From NCBI GenBank assembly GCA_964057225.1, contig OZ059894.1:16492001-16556000 (forward strand): DNA of 64,000 nt, in the 5' to 3' direction. A model generated the notes under the pieces. The model was not told the DNA's origin and searched no databases. It saw only the letters and a program-made list of their open reading frames with translations. Position 1 is the first letter of the stretch; each line of letters begins with the position of its first letter. This stretch comes from Auanema rhodensis. Its lineage: Eukaryota; Animalia; Nematoda. A program made the translations under genes and the position numbers. This document shows positions 1 through 52,662 of this stretch, piece after piece.

Positions 1-1515
1 ACGTACGACTTTTAGAATTAGGAAACTTCGAACTTCTTCGACGATTTGCTTCATATACATTTGTTTTAATATTCAGACTCTTTTTGTTACCAATTTCATC
101 ATCAGGAACTGTAATGTTTCGTCCTGTATCGTTTCCCATGCTCAAAAGTTTATTCGTGTCTTCTTGACTTTTATTGGTCGGAAGATTGCCCACAACTTCA
201 CAGTTCCGACGACGGAAATAATTTTTATCCTGAATATAATTTTAAAAATACAAAAAAAAATTAAAAGCAACCTGGTATCCTGATTGATTCTCACTTGGAA
301 TAAATGGTTTAATTTCTGCTGTATTTACTGCTTGACAGATCTCCTGTGAATTAGAATTAGAAGAGCTATTCCGTACTGTTTTGAATAACTAAAAATTCTA
401 ATTAAGTAAACAACAAATTTAAATCCTACATCGTCCCAAGGCTCAAACCGAGATAAAGTACTATATGATTTATTAAGATGTTCTAACACGTTACGATAAT
501 TCTTATCCTAAATTTTTTTAAATATACGTTGATTTGCTTGGATTACCTGATGTGATGCATTATGGGGTACGCTATTTATAGAAGTAGCTGGCTGGATCGT
601 ATTCAGATCATTTTTGGCTACCTGTCAACAACTACTAAACGAAAGATAATTGATGCTTACTTGGTTTCTGTTTTGTTCACTTTGAATTGGTACGTTGTTT
701 TCAATATCAAACTTATCTTTAACTTTTTTTACAGCTTCATACAATTGATCGATCTAAATCACAAAAATACAATGAAAGAAGATGATCACGTTACTTTGTT
801 CATTATTGAAGGATTTCTTTCATTTATTGACTTAAGTTCATTGAGCAAAGTATCAAATCTCTGTAATTTTGAATTTAAAGAGAGATGAGGGATTGAAGCG
901 TACAGTATTAAATAGGCTACAAGGTTGGTTTATGTCGTAATTTGCTGTACAATCAGTCACTTTCTTTAAAAAAATACTATTCTACTTCTACAAAGCTTTC
1001 TCCTACCTTTTTTAAATCAGGAAGTTTCAAAGATTCGTCTAAAATAAAATACTATTGTTGAATATGATGTACCTTTAAAGAACAACCATTGTGAACACTT
1101 ATTGAATTTACAACTGGTCGAAGAGCATTGCGTCCTGATTGACAATCAAGTCCTGGAGGGGATTTTCGGATATCCGAACATGACGTAAAATCGAGGTTCG
1201 CCGAATTATTTGGATTCTAATAAGTAAAATATGATGATAAACGAACAGATATTTACTGAGGCGGTCCATGTGAGAGATTTGTTTGTATCATTACTGGTAT
1301 GGCTCACTTGATCATTCAGCACAACATTTCCCAGTTTCTCAGCTTGATTGGCGACCTAATGTGTTTAATTAGAAATTAAAAACTAGTGTTTCTACCGTTT
1401 CAATTAAATTATTCACAACACAACTATAAGTCTTATGGTCATTCTCACTAAACTGCATGAACTCCTTGAAGTTTATTTTCTCCGAGTGTGAAAACTGATT
1501 GCTTCTTTGAGTCAT
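1..1515 (-). CDS. Uncharacterised multi-exon protein, low-complexity and S/N/T-rich; 3' end runs off the window
   Basis: ATG at 1515 downstream of a TTTCAACAG acceptor (MTQRSNQFSHSEKINFKEFMQFSENDHK...). A series of short GT-AG introns follows on the minus strand. No recognisable domain. Confidence 0.5.
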
Positions 1516-1851
1516 ACTTAAAATACTATCTTTCTGTTGAAATGAACAGAAAATAATAAGTATATTAGCGTTGATACACTAATTATAAAGCTATAATTTC
1601 AGAAACCATTTACAGAAAAACAATACAAAATGATAAAATGATAAAACAATATCAACACTTGCAAAAGTTTAAAAATACGCTAAATACGAAATATTGCGCC
1701 AACCAGTAGTAGCTTGCATTAAAACTTTGAAAATAATAGCATTTCTATAAACTTGAAAATTGCTAATGTCTTTTCTAGTAAATATATAAAACAAAATATA
1801 AATGAAGCCTAAAACATAGAAATATTTCAATAGTCTTCTTATTTCTCTTTC

Positions 1852-43701: not shown

Positions 43702-46410
43702 ATGTATGTGGTTAGTTCAACATTAAGTCAAACTTAGTTAAAATCTACTTATAGAATTTTCTCTCACCTGATCCAACAAAACCATGCATATTACTGAAAT
43801 GGTCTAATGTGATTATTCTTCTGGATTGTGAAGTTGACTTGTCTCCACATTACCATTTCTTACCTCATATTTTTTCACAACAGTAAGTTATTTTAATTAT
43901 ACTACGAAGTTCAAAAATGCTCTATTAAGCAAGCAATCAAAAAAATATGAAGTACTGAAGTCTGATGATCCTCTTGCTCGATATGATGCTCACAATAAGA
44001 CCGTTTACATTGATGGCCATCCCCAAGTTCTTCCTACCTCTGTAATACAAGAATTTTCCTGCACTTGTGAATAAGTAATATATATTTTTAGTTGAAAGAT
44101 TTGTCGATGGAGTTGGTGGATTGCATTCTCATTTCGAATTGGAACTCTTTACTTGCTCTTCCTTTCTATGTTCATAATACAGGCTTTAAAGGTTCCATAT
44201 ATGCAACTGAACCTGTTATTCAATTTGGAAAGTATGTTTAATTTTATTTCAAGCAAATATTTGGTGGATAAATAGATTAATGATGTCGGAATTGTTGGAA
44301 TATTTTGATCGCATGGTAGTTGACAGAGTTGAAGAAAAATGGAAAACTCCAGCTGATGTCCCGTGAGTTGTTTTATTTTGTCGTTTTGATCACATTTTTT
44401 GCAGACTCAATCATCCATGGGGTAATCCATCTGAATGGAAGCATTTCTATTCAAGGGAAATAATGGAAACCACATTAAATGCAATAACTCCAGTAGCATG
44501 GAGGCAAATGTTTGTAAGTTTTTTATTTATATAATGAAAACTGTAATTGTGATTTCAGACTATTATTGATAACATTAAGATTACTGCCTACAGCAGTGGA
44601 TTTCACATAGGTTCTTGTAATTGGGTTATTGAAGCTGAAGAAGGAAAGGTGCGATAAAGAACAATTAACGTAATATTTCCTCTTAGATTTCATATTTGGC
44701 AGCTTCAAGTGTGAGAAATACTCATGCAAAAGCTGCTGATTGGGAAAAAATAAAAGATGCTGACATCATGCTATTAACTTCATTATCTCCAATTCCTGAT
44801 AATTCGCCTATGGTTTAACAGGGTTGTTCATAGCAAGTTTACTCTTTTGCTTCCAGAGTTCAATGCAATATATTCGAGATTTAATATCCGAAACTTTAAA
44901 GAAGGGTGGTAATGTACTTATTCCTACTTTACCAGTAGGACCTGTGTTTGATTTATTAGATTTGATTGTCGGATGTATTGATAATACTGTAAGTCACAAT
45001 ATTATATTGCAATTTAAGTCGCCCTTCAGACCGGAATCTCACTTGACACGCCTATATATTTCATTTCACCCAGCGCTAAAAGTTCTCTTGCTTATTCCAA
45101 TGTTAATGCAGAATATTTGTCAACGGAGAAGCAGAATAATGTGTTTATACCTCAGGAACCATTCCTTCACTCAGAGGTTTTTTTGTTGAATTTTTCACTT
45201 AACTTTCTCTATTACAGTATGTGAAAAACGGGCGACTTAAAATCTATGATTCTCTTTATGATTCATTTTCAAAGGAATATAAAACTCCTTGTGTAGTAAG
45301 TGTATTTTGTATATACTTTATTTAGTTTCATAGGTGTTATGTGGTCACCCTACTCTTCGAGTTGGAGATGCAGCTCACTTGTTACAAATGTGGGGGAATG
45401 ATAACCGAAATGTTTTCATATCTACAAGTATTTTTTCGTTTTAATGATAAAATTAAAACATATATTTAAGATCCGGATTTTCCATTGCAACAAGTTTATG
45501 AGCCATTCAGAGATTTAGCAGTGCGAGCTTATTTTTACCCAATTGATTCACGTTTAGATTTTGCACAAATCAACAATACTATCATTCCTGATTTGAAACC
45601 TAAGGTTATTTATATCTGTCTTATTTTGATTATTGATTAATTTTCAGTGTATTTATCTCCCAGAGCAATATACCAAACCTATGTTTTTAAGAAGAAAAGA
45701 TCTTTTGGTTCAATTTGTAAGTTTTGTATCATTATTTGGATTTTATGTAAATCTCTATTCCAGAGTCATGTTACACCTCTTAAAGAAAATGAAGCTCTTA
45801 ATATAAAAGCTGTAAATGGCATAAAACGAAAAATTCGTGTTCATTCAGAGGTTCACTGTTTTTTCACTGCTTCTTGTTAATAATACAATTTTAGATAGTA
45901 AAGAAACTTGAAGCTAAGGGCTTCGCTAGCAATACTGATTTCGGATTATGCCATTTGTCGGGTGTTTTATCAGCATACGATGATGATTATGAGCTAACGG
46001 TAATTCCTTTTTATCATTTTCTAATTGTAATTACAATAATACTGTTCTTCAAAAATAATACTATTTTTATTCAGCCTCCTAAGCGAAAGTCTCGACCGAG
46101 ATTTAGTGGGAAAGTAACTCCAGAAGTCGTGGTTAAAGCAATTCAAAAGGTGTGCAGTCTCTAAATTACTTATAGTCTCAGTTCTTGCAGAGAAATTTAC
46201 AACATCGATTGTCCAGTAATCCAGACGGTTCTTTTGAAGTAGATATAGAAAGTTTAAAAGCTACACTGAGGGTTAACAAGGAAGGCAGTCGCACGACTAT
46301 CAAGGTTTTATAGATGGCTTTATCTATATTAAACCTGTTTTTAGGCTGCTCCTGAGCATCGAGGATTATTAGCCGAAATAGTTGCTTCCTACTTAACACC
46401 ATTTGGATAG
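43702..46410 (+). CDS. ints-9: Integrator complex subunit 9
   Basis: PTKPCILLKW...ILLDC, DCILISNWNSLLALPF, GFKGSIYATEPVIQFG, SGFHIGSCNWVI, GGNVLIP, SSLAYSNVNAEYL, GHPTLRVGDAAHLLQMW and YPIDSRLDF. Confidence 0.92.
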
Positions 46411-46579
46411 AAAATACTTGAATATGTAGATTTACGGGTTTTTATATATGAAGACTTTTTATTTTATAATTGTTTTCCTTAGTTTATGGTTAGCTGTTAA
46501 TAGCTCTAATTATTTATTACAGTTTATCTGTTAGGCCACGAGTTTAATTTTATGTTTTGTGTTTTTTATGAAAATATTT

Positions 46580-46650
46580 GTCGTCAGTAGTTACCATATT
46601 TTTTGTCCGCTCGGTTTATCTCAGACAGGGATAACGAATCCTCATCCGAC
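46580..46650 (-). ncRNA. snR38: Box C/D snoRNA, snR38/SNORD1 family (guides LSU rRNA Gm, yeast G2815 equivalent)
   Basis: Terminal stem GTCG/CGAC, C box ATGAGGA (46645-46639), guide GTTATCCCTGT (46635-46625) complementary to conserved LSU rRNA ACAGGGAUAAC, D' CTGA (46624-46621), D CTGA (46587-46584), and a T4 run just downstream. Confidence 0.88.
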
Positions 46651-46720
46651 GATTGGGGGGGGTCGAACCTTCGACCCACTGGCTCACTTGCGCCTCGCCC
46701 CTCTTGACCATATGTCAACC
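46651..46720 (-). promoter_or_regulatory. tRNA-like Pol III internal promoter/leader (A box + B box) fused 5' of the snoRNA
   Basis: A-box-like TGGTCAAGAGG and B box GGTTCGACCC at tRNA-like spacing. Partial acceptor stem GGTTG/CAATC; no intact cloverleaf. Confidence 0.75.
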
Positions 46721-46820
46721 TGAATGTTTATCTTATATGTAACACCATTACCCTATTTTTGTATTTTTAATGCTATTACTTTCAACATATTATGTTTCTT
46801 TTAGAATTGGATATGTGAAT

Positions 46821-47579
46821 ATGCTGAAAAGAGGGTTGCACATACTATCTCATCAGGAGAGACCTCCACTTCTAAAGCCGTTTTGTATAACTGTAAGTTA
46901 TTGTTTTCTCTATTATAAATTATTTGTACGATGAATTACGCATTAGAGATCTTTTGGTATAACATCTTTGTCACTAGGGCATGCCCTAATCAGACATGTG
47001 AGTTATAGAGTTATGGCTTTAGTTCTAACCCTAGCATGTAATTTTCTAAAAACTTCTCAGTGTGGTTATTTTATCCAATACATTAACCCTGCAGTTTTTG
47101 CATTTATTTTTAATATTAGGATCACCTCACATCAGAGAATATTTTTGATCCTGCTGTACAATGGATTGATGAGCCTAGTCAACAAGAATCCAGTTATTTA
47201 TTAGAAGAACCTACGAAGTATCCATTTCATTAACTTCGGATTTTAATCAGTATTCTTTTCTTAGAAAAGAGCAACATGATTATCACGAGGAGTTAGCTAA
47301 AATAAAGAGTGATGGTTGTGCACCTGTTAAAAGAGCATTATGTAAGTTCAACCGGTATTGAGCGTTCTCATAATTCAAATGAAATTTAACACATTCCAAT
47401 TTGTATCATAAAAGAATATATTATAGCTTTACTTATGGACTCTATCCAATCAAGATCGGGAATGAAAACTTCTTTATCTAGCTGTAATGTGACTTTATTC
47501 AATTTTCATTCAACAAAGTATGAAACATTTTCTTTTATTCAAAACTACAATATGATATTCAGGTTCGCTGAACGTTTGA
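46821..47579 (+). CDS. Possible small orphan multi-exon gene
   Basis: Phase-compatible exons (DHLTSENIFDPAVQWIDEPSQQESSYLLEEPTKKEQHDYHEELAKIKSDGCAPVKRALSLLMDSIQSR). Both ends are uncertain. Confidence 0.3.
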
Positions 47580-47715: not shown

Positions 47716-50221
47716 TTACCATACATTGAAAATTAATAAGTACAAAAGTGATAAGAGATATGATATATTTTGAACGCAGCTGTGATAGGTTGTGGATCTT
47801 AATCGAGGTCTGGGGTTGTTATAGTTATAGTCTGGAAAGATTTAATTTTCGGTTTCTTGGAGATCTTAATAATATTTTTTTAAACTACCTAAACTCGTTT
47901 CATAGTCTATGGGCTCATCAATTTGTCTTGACTTTGCTCCGCCACCACCTCTACTTCTTCTATTGAATACTACAGCTTTTGGACGTGTTGACTGATCTCT
48001 GAATCATGATACTTTTGTTTTTTTTCTATTTAATTTCTTACCTGCTGATGTGTACAAGTTCTTTATCAGTACGACTGAAAGAAGACATCCCTTTTGGTGA
48101 TTCTTCAATATTTTCTTGCTCAAATGCTGACGATATGAGCGGAAATGTTTCATATACATCTCTTTGGGAATGAAGAATCTGCTCTTGATTATCCCGATTA
48201 CGATGCTGAAAATTATTTTTTATTAAAAATATATTTTATGCTCTTCATTTTCTGATTCTCTCACGTAAATACTTTTTTTTCCTTTTTCTGTGCTGCACTC
48301 ATGTTCTTATATAGTGATACAGAAACGTTTGAATCTGATGATATTACGGCTATCACTACGAATAGTGAATAGCTTTTGTTCACTTCTTTGTTGTTCTGAA
48401 TTGAGTTGTCTTACGCATTTTTCGGATGCCATCATCTAACCTAACTCAATTCTCTGAGTTGCTTTAAAGCCGATTTAAAATCTCAGGATAATTTCAAAAT
48501 TTAAATATTGGGTTTCAATTCATCGCTTTTGACGTCACAAATGAGTGTCACATAATTTCTTTCAACGGAACTCCACTCGATTCATTAGACAATACCATTT
48601 CTGTAGTACCCCCATAGCCCATAACCACCGGAAATCAGATTGATTTCGTGGATCTCGTTTAGGCTAGTACGAATGGCACTAAACTAACACAACAAGAAGC
48701 TAAGGTCAACGGCTTGTCTAAGATTTCGTGCAAGAAACAAAAGACCCGACTACTAAATAGTTAGAGTTTATGGATTTTCTTTGAGTACTCACCCCATGAG
48801 GCATTTTCACACGACTCCTGCTGGTTAATGTGTGTGTATTTCCTCTTTGATAAACTGTTACATGACATTGCCAAACTCCAGCATCTTCAGCTACGTCAAC
48901 GGGGCGAATTTCCATGGAAAAATCTCCAGTTAATTCGTCGTAATCAAAAAAATAACGACCATTATTAAGTAGAACTCTTAAGACCTTTTTTCCTGGAATT
49001 CAAATTCTTTTTAGTTACAACGTTGTGGCACAAGTTCTTAATTACCAGCAACTGTCCTTTTATTAAATGTTGTTAGTTTGTTGTACACTCTTTTTTCTCC
49101 ATTTTCAATTTTCAACCATATAGTATCATTCAAAGTCCATGTAACTTCAATCCGAACCTAAATTGCAATATGAAAATAGTAGTATCAGATAGTTTTAATG
49201 TCCTTACGAGGCTATTGCTTGCATCTGCTACATGTGGGCAATTCAATGAGAATGATTCATACTGATGTGACTTTGGGTTAGTAATTGTAAATGCTGCTGA
49301 TTTGTAAGGTGGTGATTTGAGATCTTGAAAATGAATTCGTATTACTGAGGTTTTCATGAGAGTTGTTTTCACATTCCTACTGAGTACTTAGCCCAGTGGC
49401 TAAAAACTTGAAGTCAACTACCTTTTACCTGTTAGAAATGATTAATTTTTGATAGCAATATAGCTTTCATGCTTTCGTAGCAGAGCATAGAAATTGAAAT
49501 TTGTAGTTTGTTATGAGCAAATAGTAACTCTGTCATAACTAACAAGTGAGGCAACTCAATTTCTAAACTTGTGATATGAATACTTAAGTTTATTTTGATT
49601 ACTAGAATAAAGCTCGATCACATTATAATTGAATAAATATGAAAGAAACTAAATATATTTATTCTTTAATACATTCGTGTATATGAATAAATGAATCTCT
49701 GTGATATAAATATTCTTAATGCTCCGAATTTAAAGATTTGGGTTTTCGTATATTATGTTAATGTGTCATTCATCCAATATATTACAATAAGTTTTGACGG
49801 ATTGTGAATGTTTTAAGATGTCTGACAAGCAAAAATTAATATATTTCATTGCAATGACTACTAATCTTTCTTTAAACTATTAAGTATATAAAAATAACTA
49901 ATGTTTTATATGAATTAATTGATCATACTTTAATGAAACATTCGTTTTTGCTACAATCATCCACCACTTTGCTATTTTTAGAATTTTTGAATATAATTGC
50001 AAAATATTTATTCGATACTGACCTCTTGAGTGTCGTAATCGATGCAAGTGCCTAATATTTTGTTGAAAACCTTGTGGCTCTTCGACACTGAATTCAACTG
50101 CTAGCGAAAATTGGCACGTTGAGAAGATAATACAGATCAAAGCAAAAATGGATTGAGATTGTCGCGCCTGGTAGAAAAGATGAATGAAATGCATATGAAA
50201 ATAGATGAAACATACCTTCAT
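47716..50221 (-). CDS. Single Ig-domain cell-surface protein, probably GPI-anchored (oig-like)
   Basis: Signal peptide, Ig core FSLNCP...VTWT...FSMEIRPVDVAEDAGVWQCHV, low-complexity stalk and hydrophobic C-terminus (SYLLSLLYLLIFNVW*). Confidence 0.75.
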
Positions 50222-50699
50222 TATGTTGTGTTGAAGCCCAGCTCAATTCAATGCATCACATAGCACGTCGTGAGTTAGTGTAGTAGATAATTCTAGAAGG
50301 TATCTAAAGAACTATACTAAGAAAGAATAAATTTGTGTTTATGGAAAAGTTTGAAAAGCATCAGAAACAAATAGGGGCAATGCCACAGATTACTCATTGA
50401 GGTTGAATCTGAAGCGTGCGAACTTGGGTCCTCAGTAGAATAAGTTCTATGCTGAAGGAGCTTTTTCACAAGCTCCGCCTCTTGGGGGTCTTTTTACATT
50501 TGATCGACTTATAGCAAGAATCTGTTGTTTTTGTCATTTATAACAAAGTGAAATCATGAGGCTGATATAAATATGATTATTGATTGCAAAGAGACAAATA
50601 TACATCTTTCAATGAATACTTTTTTATGAAATGTTAGTTATAATATAATTCATAACTTCATTCATGTATATATGCTAAAATTGAAAAACTACTTATACA

Positions 50700-52369
50700 G
50701 AAAATATACTTTGTCTTTCTTGAGTAAGATCTCTTTGTTTACGGAGAGTTTAGCCATTTATGTATAAGTTTAGTCCTTTTTTCAAATTGGGCTCATGAAG
50801 TAAATTTGTTTAGAGCAAGGAACTTATTTAGCTGTTGATGAATGAGTTTTTTTATTCTTAAATGATTTAGCTGTGTTCGTTCCGTGTCTCAGAGGATTTC
50901 TTATCCATCATGAAACAAATTGCACAAACTGCCAGACTTTTCTAAGTTAGTACCAAACTGGACTCTTGTTGATTTCTGGACCGAAATTTTATGTTTCATC
51001 TAGTAGAACACAGTTCTTGAGACTAAAAGCGTTCTGAGAAAGTAGCTGTGCTCGAATATTGAATGGATTTTCATAAGATATGTGTGAAAACTCCTTAGTT
51101 TTTGTATTTATTGCGAAAATTGTTTTCTTTTACAAAAGAATCACCGATTAGAAATAGTTCAATTTGTTTTTTTCATCTTCAGCAATTTGCAAAACAGCAA
51201 AAGGAGGCGCATAATGTTAATGCATATCGGGCTGATCTTGCATCCTTATTAGGCATTGGTAGGAAAAAGCTGCTGAAATTACCAAAGCAACTGTTTCCTT
51301 CTGGAGTAGAGGAAAATAATCTCTGCTTTGTTCCAGCTTCTTCCGGTTTGTTTCCGATTTTTGATTTCATTAATTTTGGTATTTAGATGAATCTGGCTGT
51401 CGCTTTGAAAAATCCCCAATCATAGTGTCAGTCTTGCCGGTTGCAAGCCAACAGTCAGCAGTTCTGGACGCATTGAAGGTTTTCAATTTAAACACTTCAG
51501 TTTGAATAACATGATGGATGCATTTAGAAAAATGTAGTTTTACATCATGCGGGAATAGACAGAGATACTCTATATCGCTTTGGAGCTGTCGAATTCATGA
51601 CATTTTTGGATGTTACTCATTTCAGCCATTTGCTTTGCTCAATTGATAGCAGTCTTGATTTTTATACTCATTCAATCAGGAGAAATTCAGCACTATTTCA
51701 TAAGTTTTTCCAAATTACGTTCGTTTCTTTGTTCTCCGTGTTCTGAATGGTTTACATTTCAGACTGCTCCGAAAGCAAGGATTTCAAAGAACAAGTTTTC
51801 ATCCTCCTATTTTAAAACCCTTAAAACGTGTATCTCTACCTCATGCTGCCAAACTAGAGAAGGTTTCAAAGCGGCTGCTCTGTTTTTCTGATATAAATTT
51901 TCAGCTGCAATTGTTTCCTGGTTTACAGTATGCTGTTTCGATAAAACCACGCACTGCATTTTCCTTAAGTGGAACTTTCCTGAACACAACAGATCAAGAA
52001 GGGAATTTTATTGGAAGGTTTTGATTTATTATATATAACAATAAAATATCTGTCAACTATAGTGATCTCCTAATACCATTTGATTTTTGGGTTCAAGCAA
52101 TTGGCAAGCATTCACACAACAAGAAGGTTGAAGATATTGCCAAGTGAGTTCTTTAAAACTGACTTCAATAAAAACTGTTTTTCAGAACAATGTTTCCACA
52201 ATCTTCAACTCGAGTATTCGAAGTTGTCCCTAAAGAATCTAAAATTGGAGAAGTTCCTGATGTATTGCTTGAAGACATGTTTCTGGAGGCAGTGGATGAG
52301 CTGCGTGAATCCAATGATTACAAAAAATATTTGAAGATTCTCAAAGTTAAACGGGAAATCGATAACTAG
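50700..52369 (+). CDS. Uncharacterised multi-exon protein; 5' end unresolved
   Basis: Phase-consistent plus-strand exons (QFAKQQKEAHNVNAYRADLASLLG...; LQLFPGLQYAVSIKPRTAFSLSGTF; DLLIPFDFWVQAIG...KVKREIDN*). Confidence 0.55.
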
Positions 52370-52590: not shown

Positions 52591-52662
52591 AGCAGCGTGG
52601 CGCAGTGGAAGCGTGCTGGGCCCATAACCCAGAGGTCGGTGGATCGAAACCACTCGCTGCTA
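52591..52662 (+). tRNA. tRNA-iMet: Initiator tRNA-Met (CAT)
   Basis: 72-nt cloverleaf AGCAGCG...CGCTGCTA with A1:U72, three G:C pairs in the anticodon stem, CAT anticodon and T-loop GATCGAAA (A54/A60). Confidence 0.98.

Follow-up and report, generated by a model that had tools for sequence, protein, structure and literature searches.

The 64,000 nucleotides of Auanema rhodensis DNA analysed here (hereafter the window) probably carry a self-contained snoRNA gene of the nematode UM2 type, predicted from its sequence to be transcribed by RNA polymerase III (Pol III). The window corresponds to G000:C1:16492001-16556000 of a source genome of 181 Mb, which is AT-rich and assembled in 112 contigs. 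The unit lies on the minus strand (46723-46571, 153 nt as a whole) and consists, in order, of a GC-rich leader of 73 nt, a box C/D RNA of 71 nt, five bases and a run of four T (T4). Its GC content is 46%, compared with approximately 30% in the surrounding DNA. The boxes and their spacing, the terminator, the complementarity of the guide, the uniqueness in the genome and the recurrence of the layout were read directly from the DNA. The features concerned are as follows.

46651-46723, minus strand: predicted transcribed leader with a UM2-type internal promoter, from the sequence; its start would lie approximately 9-13 nt upstream of the A box
46700-46710, minus strand: A-box-like element TGGTCAAGAGG, agreeing with TRGCNNAGTGG at 9 of 11 positions, i.e. 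with two mismatches
46659-46669, minus strand: B box GGTTCGACCCC, matching GGTTCGANNCC at every position; 30 nt separate it from the A box
46660-46677, minus strand: palindrome GGGTCGAA-GG-TTCGACCC, 18 nt, folding into a hairpin of 7 bp in the structure predicted for the leader
46580-46650, minus strand: box C/D snoRNA of 71 nt with a guide of the snR38/SNORD1/ceN61 type; boxes and stem read directly, with sub-threshold Rfam matches
46639-46645, minus strand: C box AUGAGGA, read from the sequence, with G for U at position 5
46625-46635, minus strand: D' guide GTTATCCCTGT, 11/11 Watson-Crick pairs to LSU ACAGGGATAAC, the middle G being the predicted target
46621-46624, minus strand: D' box CTGA, from the sequence and the Rfam alignment
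46590-46598, minus strand: second antisense element TATGGTAAC, able to pair over 8 bp with AGUUACCA
46584-46587, minus strand: D box CTGA, read from the sequence
46571-46574, minus strand: T4 run, predicted Pol III terminator, read from the sequence; the first T4 past the leader start
46176-46313, plus strand: last recognisable exon of an INTS9-like (metallo-beta-lactamase/beta-CASP) gene, from its translation and a weak PF16661 match (one exon); context only

The original prediction had named, in a GC-rich island of the minus strand, the A-box-like element, the B box, the palindrome, the guide with its CTGA, and a complete 71-nt C/D snoRNA (46650-46580) followed by a T4 terminator (46574-46571); all of this is borne out. 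In the snoRNA, the C box is located near the 5' end and deviates from the RUGAUGA consensus at one position, the D box is located near the 3' end, and a short terminal stem of 4 bp (GUCG/CGAC) is formed between GTCG at 46650-46647 and CGAC at 46583-46580, which follows the D box. The C' region is degenerate.

Two Rfam runs were made, a scan of the window at gathering thresholds and then a local scan by E-value. At gathering thresholds the sole report in the window was an initiator tRNA-Met. In the E-value scan the snoRNA matched Caenorhabditis ceN61 (RF01647) with 27.2 bits (E 6e-4; gathering threshold 60) and snoR38 (RF00213) with 27.8 bits (E 0.019; gathering threshold 45); the next matches were Tetrahymena TtnuCD17 and Giardia GlsR6, and the guide is identical in all four families. 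An snR38/SNORD1 hit had been expected from such a search, and snoR38 and ceN61 are indeed the top matches, but both stay under their gathering scores. As the scores are lower than the curated cut-offs, the snoRNA falls, on that criterion, outside both families. Despite the low scores the guide, both boxes and the second antisense element align end to end; the ceN61 and snoR38 models are narrow.

The D' guide GUUAUCCCUGU beside CUGA is common to ceN61 (RF01647), snoR38 (RF00213), yeast snR38, human SNORD1 and the A. rhodensis RNA. With ceN61 the likeness goes further, as both RNAs contain the second element UAUGGUAAC and the stretch GGACAAAA, and both are without U at C-box position 5, where ceN61 reads UGACGA. 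On the other hand, the spacer sequences of ceN61 and snoR38 are unlike those of the A. rhodensis snoRNA, and the second element sits in another register with respect to the D box than it does in ceN61. Regarding the C box, another snoRNA unit of the genome (L019; G000:C4:7347525-7347590, minus strand) has the same non-canonical UGAGGA as 46639-46645, and in C. elegans ceN61 the UGACGA is accompanied by a CCGA-like D box; C-box position 5 and D-box position 2 may co-vary.

To find what the guide would pair with, the rDNA of the same genome was located, its SSU, 5.8S and LSU were delimited with Rfam, and ungapped duplexes were scanned. The D' guide, in RNA form GUUAUCCCUGU directly before CUGA, has one outstanding rRNA site, LSU ACAGGGAUAAC, which is the best site across the rDNA unit and is matched in 11 of 11 pairs. 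A guide of this type should present, beside the D' box, at least 10 nt able to pair with LSU ACAGGGAUAAC, and the fifth pair should involve the target G; here the fifth pair is the middle G, LSU position 2903 (L026 numbering). The proposed snR38/SNORD1 guide assignment is thereby upheld, both by the match to the genome's own LSU and by the Rfam snoR38 consensus, in which the guide is identical. The LSU target G is the one methylated via yeast snR38 (Gm2815) and human SNORD1, in the peptidyl-transferase region.

The guide together with the D' box, a 15-mer, occurs once in 181 Mb (the reversed-pattern control gave 0), and this is therefore the sole snR38-type guide gene in the genome. The single match to the guide with one mismatch, at C4:8749749, is not a snoRNA. 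The rDNA itself is found on contig C8 (L026, L027) in two array types. One, at the contig start, repeats every ~8394 bp; the other, at 10.97-11.85 Mb, has a period of ~6567 bp. The ~6567-bp array has blocks in both orientations, both types include full SSU, 5.8S and LSU, and the LSU pattern has 660 matches genome-wide.

In the duplex scan, the LSU sequence AGUUACCA that the second antisense element pairs with adjoins the 5' side of the D' target. The element is kept in ceN61, partly in TtnuCD17, and in two apparently intronic homologues from a metagenome contig, and its distance from the D box varies among these RNAs and that of A. rhodensis. Since with a variable distance the nucleotide selected would vary too, the element is read as accessory pairing, which probably strengthens rRNA binding beside the methylation target; alternatively, it could weakly guide another methylation, at U2895. 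Accessory pairing of box C/D snoRNAs with rRNA was reportedly described by van Nues et al. in 2011, and the A. rhodensis RNA would resemble such snoRNAs in that its second antisense element pairs with rRNA right beside the target. The metagenome scan for guide plus second element returned one contig, MDSQ01088306.1 (L025), from an unrelated eukaryote, and no nematode orthologue. Two snR38-type box C/D snoRNAs are located on it, at 1000-1070 and 1495-1560 (minus), each apparently intronic with GT...AG nearby, and neither has an A/B-box leader. This contig exemplifies the usual intron-hosted mode, with which the nematode layout contrasts.

The start of the leader was positioned from C. elegans 5' RACE data (PMC2527325). 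The A box begins 60 nt upstream of the first base of the snoRNA and the B box stops 8 nt before it, so that the geometry is that of UM2, with boxes approximately 30-33 bp apart and within approximately 70 bp of the mature 5' end. When both strands of the 64-kb window were scanned for A and B boxes (at most 2 mismatches in A, at most 1 in B, spacing 24-45), two sites only were found, namely the snoRNA leader and the true tRNA-iMet at 52591-52662. The U2 snRNA genes of the genome have a common PSE-like motif at about -65 to -40, which is absent from the leader, and in this respect too the unit agrees with UM2, where no snRNA-type (UM1) promoter is expected. At least 35 near-identical U2 genes are located at G000:C1:10.96-11.28 Mb (L034-L040), in arrays spaced ~2.1-2.5 kb, each behind the PSE-like motif GAGTRCACNCGTANNAANTACG.

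It could be supposed that the resemblance to A and B boxes arose by chance in a GC-rich promoter of another type, and that the snoRNA has an independent Pol II promoter that went unrecognised. The two mismatches in the A box, and the fact that no tRNA model detects the leader, agree with this reading. However, one hundred block shuffles gave 0.07 A+B pairs per window (128 kb, both strands), and the pair that was found sits exactly upstream of the snoRNA. The absence of the genome's PSE-like motif and the recurrence of the extended motif GGGTC-N3-GGTTCRA in other leaders also speak against chance, which makes this explanation very improbable.

The UM2-type promoter that we prefer does not make the leader a tRNA. 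The original prediction saw in it a decayed tRNA-like head; the A and B boxes are indeed present, 30 nt apart, but the 'partial acceptor stem' reported with them comprises no more than 3 bp, and the leader cannot be recognised as a tRNA. ARAGORN made no tRNA call on it, and the Rfam tRNA model did not match it, even when 91 nt were searched and E values up to 10 were allowed, which agrees with the pseudogene or absent call that had been anticipated from tRNA detectors. The minimum free energy (MFE) fold of the leader contains no cloverleaf, only 3 of 5 pairs of a canonical T-stem can form, and the fold is not better than that of shuffles (z -1.7). With no tRNA call, no cloverleaf and a stem of at most 3 pairs, the leader keeps the promoter boxes of a tRNA and nothing else recognisable. 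Its descent from a tRNA is a hypothesis published for this promoter type.

The same results bear on the idea of a plant-type dicistronic tRNA-snoRNA gene, in which RNase P and RNase Z would free a functional tRNA. In its favour are the B box, the order in which the elements stand and the plant precedent cited in PMC2527325, but the lack of an ARAGORN call, of an Rfam tRNA match (91-nt search, E up to 10) and of a cloverleaf in the MFE fold, together with a T-stem of 3/5 pairs, refute it at the sequence level and leave it virtually no chance of being right.

The palindrome in the leader had been said to compete with the T-arm. In the predicted fold this is the case, as the hairpin beats the canonical T-arm. 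Its first arm (GGGTC) overlaps the extended B-box motif GGGTC-N3-GGTTCRA, which is common to other leaders of the genome, and the palindrome therefore need not be special to 46660-46677; it is probably incidental, and in tRNA terms GGGTC would resemble the variable loop plus T-stem. The predicted fold of 46651-46723 also stacks the hairpin on a GGGG/CCCC stem, giving 11 bp with a continuous 3' strand, a modelled arrangement reminiscent of the acceptor/T minihelix of tRNAs.

At the other end of the unit the T4 run begins 6 nt past the terminal stem, well within the 40 bp of the mature 3' end in which a stop of at least four T is looked for. It is a minimal Pol III stop, and no internal T4 is found between the leader start and 46574-46571.

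The layout is not confined to this locus. The original prediction had suggested a genome-wide scan for A/B-box leaders abutting C boxes; nine further leader-plus-RNA units were confirmed (loci L002, L003, two in L007, L008, and L019 to L023), but, with 150 of ~27,000 first-look candidates scored by the covariance model R1, their number is not a genome-wide count. Strict patterns (B box, gap, C box) had given 2-5 loci, and a looser A+B+C pattern mostly coding-repeat noise. R1, a sequence-only model built from six leaders, regained its own members and six weak candidates, five of which are leader-plus-RNA units, the sixth (L024) being a partial match only. Two candidates were dropped, namely L009, which is a true tRNA-His, and L010, which has an internal T4. 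Box C/D features are clear in seven of the nine further units, the others being L021, where the C box is unclear, and L023, which may belong to another RNA class.

Each further unit has a B box, often after GGGTC or GGGTT, and its first T4 only past the RNA; in the seven clear ones the snoRNA follows a few bases downstream. None of the nine received a tRNA call, and outside the boxes the sequences of the leaders are unrelated. The spacing of the boxes is 30-31 in four of the six units that have an A box with at most 2 mismatches. This figure calls for caution, since ties were broken in favour of spacings near 32 and the A boxes picked in the remaining units are weak. In 9/9 folded leaders (L002, L003, L007, L008, L019, L020, L022 and window 46651-46723) the predicted structure has a hairpin over the B-box region whose end precedes the snoRNA by 1-10 nt; this is a simple count over predicted folds, and the consensus of the B box is self-complementary in any case.

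The unit was also said to be antisense to the flanking genes. It is located approximately 260 nt past the INTS9-like stop codon, on the opposite strand, and plus-strand blocks that are conserved with a relative (L028) restart at 47263. With the unit on the minus strand, and the INTS9-like gene and the blocks from 47263 on the plus strand, the statement holds. The exons of the INTS9-like gene were searched singly, by reference, and other exons were seen in three-frame translation. Exact-ORF look-ups in transcript contigs gave no match.

On the minus strand a different source of the RNA can be imagined, in which the snoRNA is cut from a longer Pol II transcript, for example by read-through from the Ig-like gene region at ~47.9-50.1 kb, and the boxes are an inactive relic. 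The Ig-like ORF upstream on that strand (48718-48915) and the leaderless, intron-derived snR38-type snoRNAs of another eukaryote (L025) lend this some support. However, a perfect B box stands at the correct distance from the A box, the unit closes with T4 and contains none internally, no splice sites closely flank it, and nine other loci present the same package. Moreover, in C. elegans, where box A or box B was mutated in a CeN37 reporter, both boxes are needed for expression and the whole promoter activity is contained within 100 bp (PMC2527325), i.e. the boxes are necessary and sufficient. Read-through is on balance distinctly unlikely.

A relative was found by searching one INTS9-like exon against protein representatives, which led to contig L028 of assembly GCA_943334845.2. 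Vps54, a channel gene of the ASC type, INTS9 and a tRNA-iMet that is identical are found there in the same order, the syntenic INTS9 gene carries PF16661 and PF10996, and DNA identity with the window is ~69% over 9 kb. The flanks align between window 46300-46502 and L028 8563-8761, and between window 46795-47011 and L028 8842-9050; consequently a stretch of 293 nt in A. rhodensis, in which all 153 nt of the unit lie, has only 81 nt as its counterpart in L028, and the spacer is barely alignable. Neither the guide nor any leader is present at any place in the 17 kb of L028. The unit is likewise absent at a more distant INTS9 locus (L029), and L030 (P0001) has no DNA similarity to the window. A gain in the A. 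rhodensis lineage would, from these alignments, be somewhat more likely than two losses.

Two further features of this region may be recorded. The initiator tRNA-Met is of the animal type (window 52591-52662, plus strand, 57.4 bits) and is 100% identical over 80 nt to L028 17064-17143. Window 47886-51088 aligns reversed to L028 14880-11811 while both flanks are collinear, and therefore approximately 3 kb have been inverted between the two species; the inverted block holds the Ig-like ORF (48718-48915, minus in the window).

The absence of the unit at the orthologous site of the syntenic relative, and the fact that a unit with an internal promoter could in principle retropose, would both fit a dead retrocopy or SINE-like repeat with a snoRNA-like sequence and no function. 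Repetition is, however, not observed. A 160-nt query matches itself alone in 181 Mb, and the single-copy unit is therefore no SINE; the case in which the whole 150 nt would be a high-copy SINE, named originally as one that would overturn the reading, is not what was found. For the same reason a tRNA-derived SINE, which requires dispersed copies, was rejected. No convincing target-site duplication or A-tail is seen at the unit; a candidate duplication read by eye on either side, AGATAAAC, is too short for AT-rich DNA. Furthermore, the unit is the genome's only carrier of a deeply conserved guide, and none of its boxes, its terminal stem or its two antisense elements is damaged, all being in agreement with ceN61, so a functionless copy appears extremely improbable.

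The unit would be movable as a cassette because its promoter lies inside the transcript. One may speculate that leader-plus-snoRNA units are self-sufficient mobile cassettes, spread by retroposition or small segmental copying, and that the sole, essential snR38-type gene was relocated recently, which we regard as rather doubtful. If the cassette reading were general, positions of nematode snoRNA genes would turn over like tRNA-derived SINEs.

The expression of the unit can be pictured in steps, of which the polymerase, the start site, the removal of the leader and the methylation are what we infer. TFIIIC would bind the A- and B-box-like elements of the 73-nt leader, and Pol III would start close to 46720, some 10 nt ahead of the A box. 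Leader and snoRNA would be transcribed together, as an RNA of approximately 150 nt, until the stop at T4 46574-46571. Box C/D proteins would assemble on the kink-turn of C and D and the 4-bp terminal stem, and removal of the leader and of a 9-nt trailer would leave the 71-nt snoRNA. Finally, the D' guide would pair with LSU ACAGGGAUAAC and direct 2'-O-methylation of the middle G. As a whole, the architecture originally proposed stands, i.e. a leader resembling a tRNA promoter, a snoRNA of the snR38/ceN61 type, an oligo-T stop, and a self-contained position antisense to the INTS9-like gene; the descent of the leader from a tRNA and the route of its processing are hypotheses.

What the analysis provides is, first, the correct annotation of an unannotated gene, predicted to be the only guide in A. 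rhodensis for the conserved Gm of the peptidyl-transferase region. Second, the layout of C. elegans UM2 snoRNA genes is extended to another nematode lineage. Third, the presence/absence difference to the syntenic relative is a small handle on the movement of self-contained RNA genes. The locus opens no new question.

Outside the nematodes, the closest parallels are the plant dicistronic tRNA-snoRNA genes (Kruszka et al. 2003, as cited in PMC2527325), in which the upstream functional tRNA is cut by RNase Z, and yeast snR52 with its A/B-box leader (Guffanti et al. 2006, as cited in PMC2527325). In both, as predicted for A. rhodensis, a single transcript carries a Pol III internal-promoter element followed by a box C/D snoRNA; in the plant type, however, the upstream element is a functional tRNA, whereas the A. 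rhodensis leader is not a tRNA by any test.

The nearest known system is the UM2 class of C. elegans. Its box A- and B-like sub-motifs are 33 bp apart (Li et al. 2008, PMC2527325), transcription starts 9-13 bp upstream of box A, at a distance of approximately 70 bp from the end of the mature snoRNA, on its upstream side, the motif is located within a short-lived primary transcript, and termination occurs at runs of at least four T; an origin from tRNA-snoRNA dicistronic genes has been proposed (PMC2527325). UM2 loci are expressed independently of host genes (He et al. 2006, PMC1474057). Among the Pol III-bound TFIIIC sites of C. elegans there are 52 snoRNA sites (Stutzman et al. 2020, PMC6950938), and Pol III factors were detected on box A/B at 51 snoRNA genes (Sin et al. 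2017, PMC5364375); the latter authors cite unprocessed long snoRNA transcripts after NPP-13 knock-down, and for Pol III/TFIIIC occupancy of UM2-type loci both PMC6950938 and PMC5364375 cite Ikegami and Lieb 2013. C. elegans ceN61 has no TMG cap (PMC2200864 supplement).

The C. elegans UM2 loci (Deng et al. 2006; Li et al. 2008) and the A. rhodensis unit share A/B-like boxes approximately 30-33 nt apart in the approximately 70 nt that precede the mature snoRNA, a leader within the transcript (a predicted one in A. rhodensis), and an oligo-T stop after the RNA. UM2 loci are expressed irrespective of their neighbours, intronic or intergenic and on either strand, a behaviour to which the A. rhodensis unit is likened from sequence. 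The two differ in that the species is another nematode and that UM2 loci have expression and ChIP support, whereas the A. rhodensis unit is known by its sequence; moreover, the likeness is to UM2 loci as a class. In C. elegans the layout was described as early as 2006-2008, with promoter tests (PMC2527325; PMC6950938; PMC5364375), and the A. rhodensis unit is therefore an ordinary one. As far as its sequence goes, the locus fits every criterion of the UM2 class, and the model first proposed for it is in effect the published UM2 model, carried to a new species.
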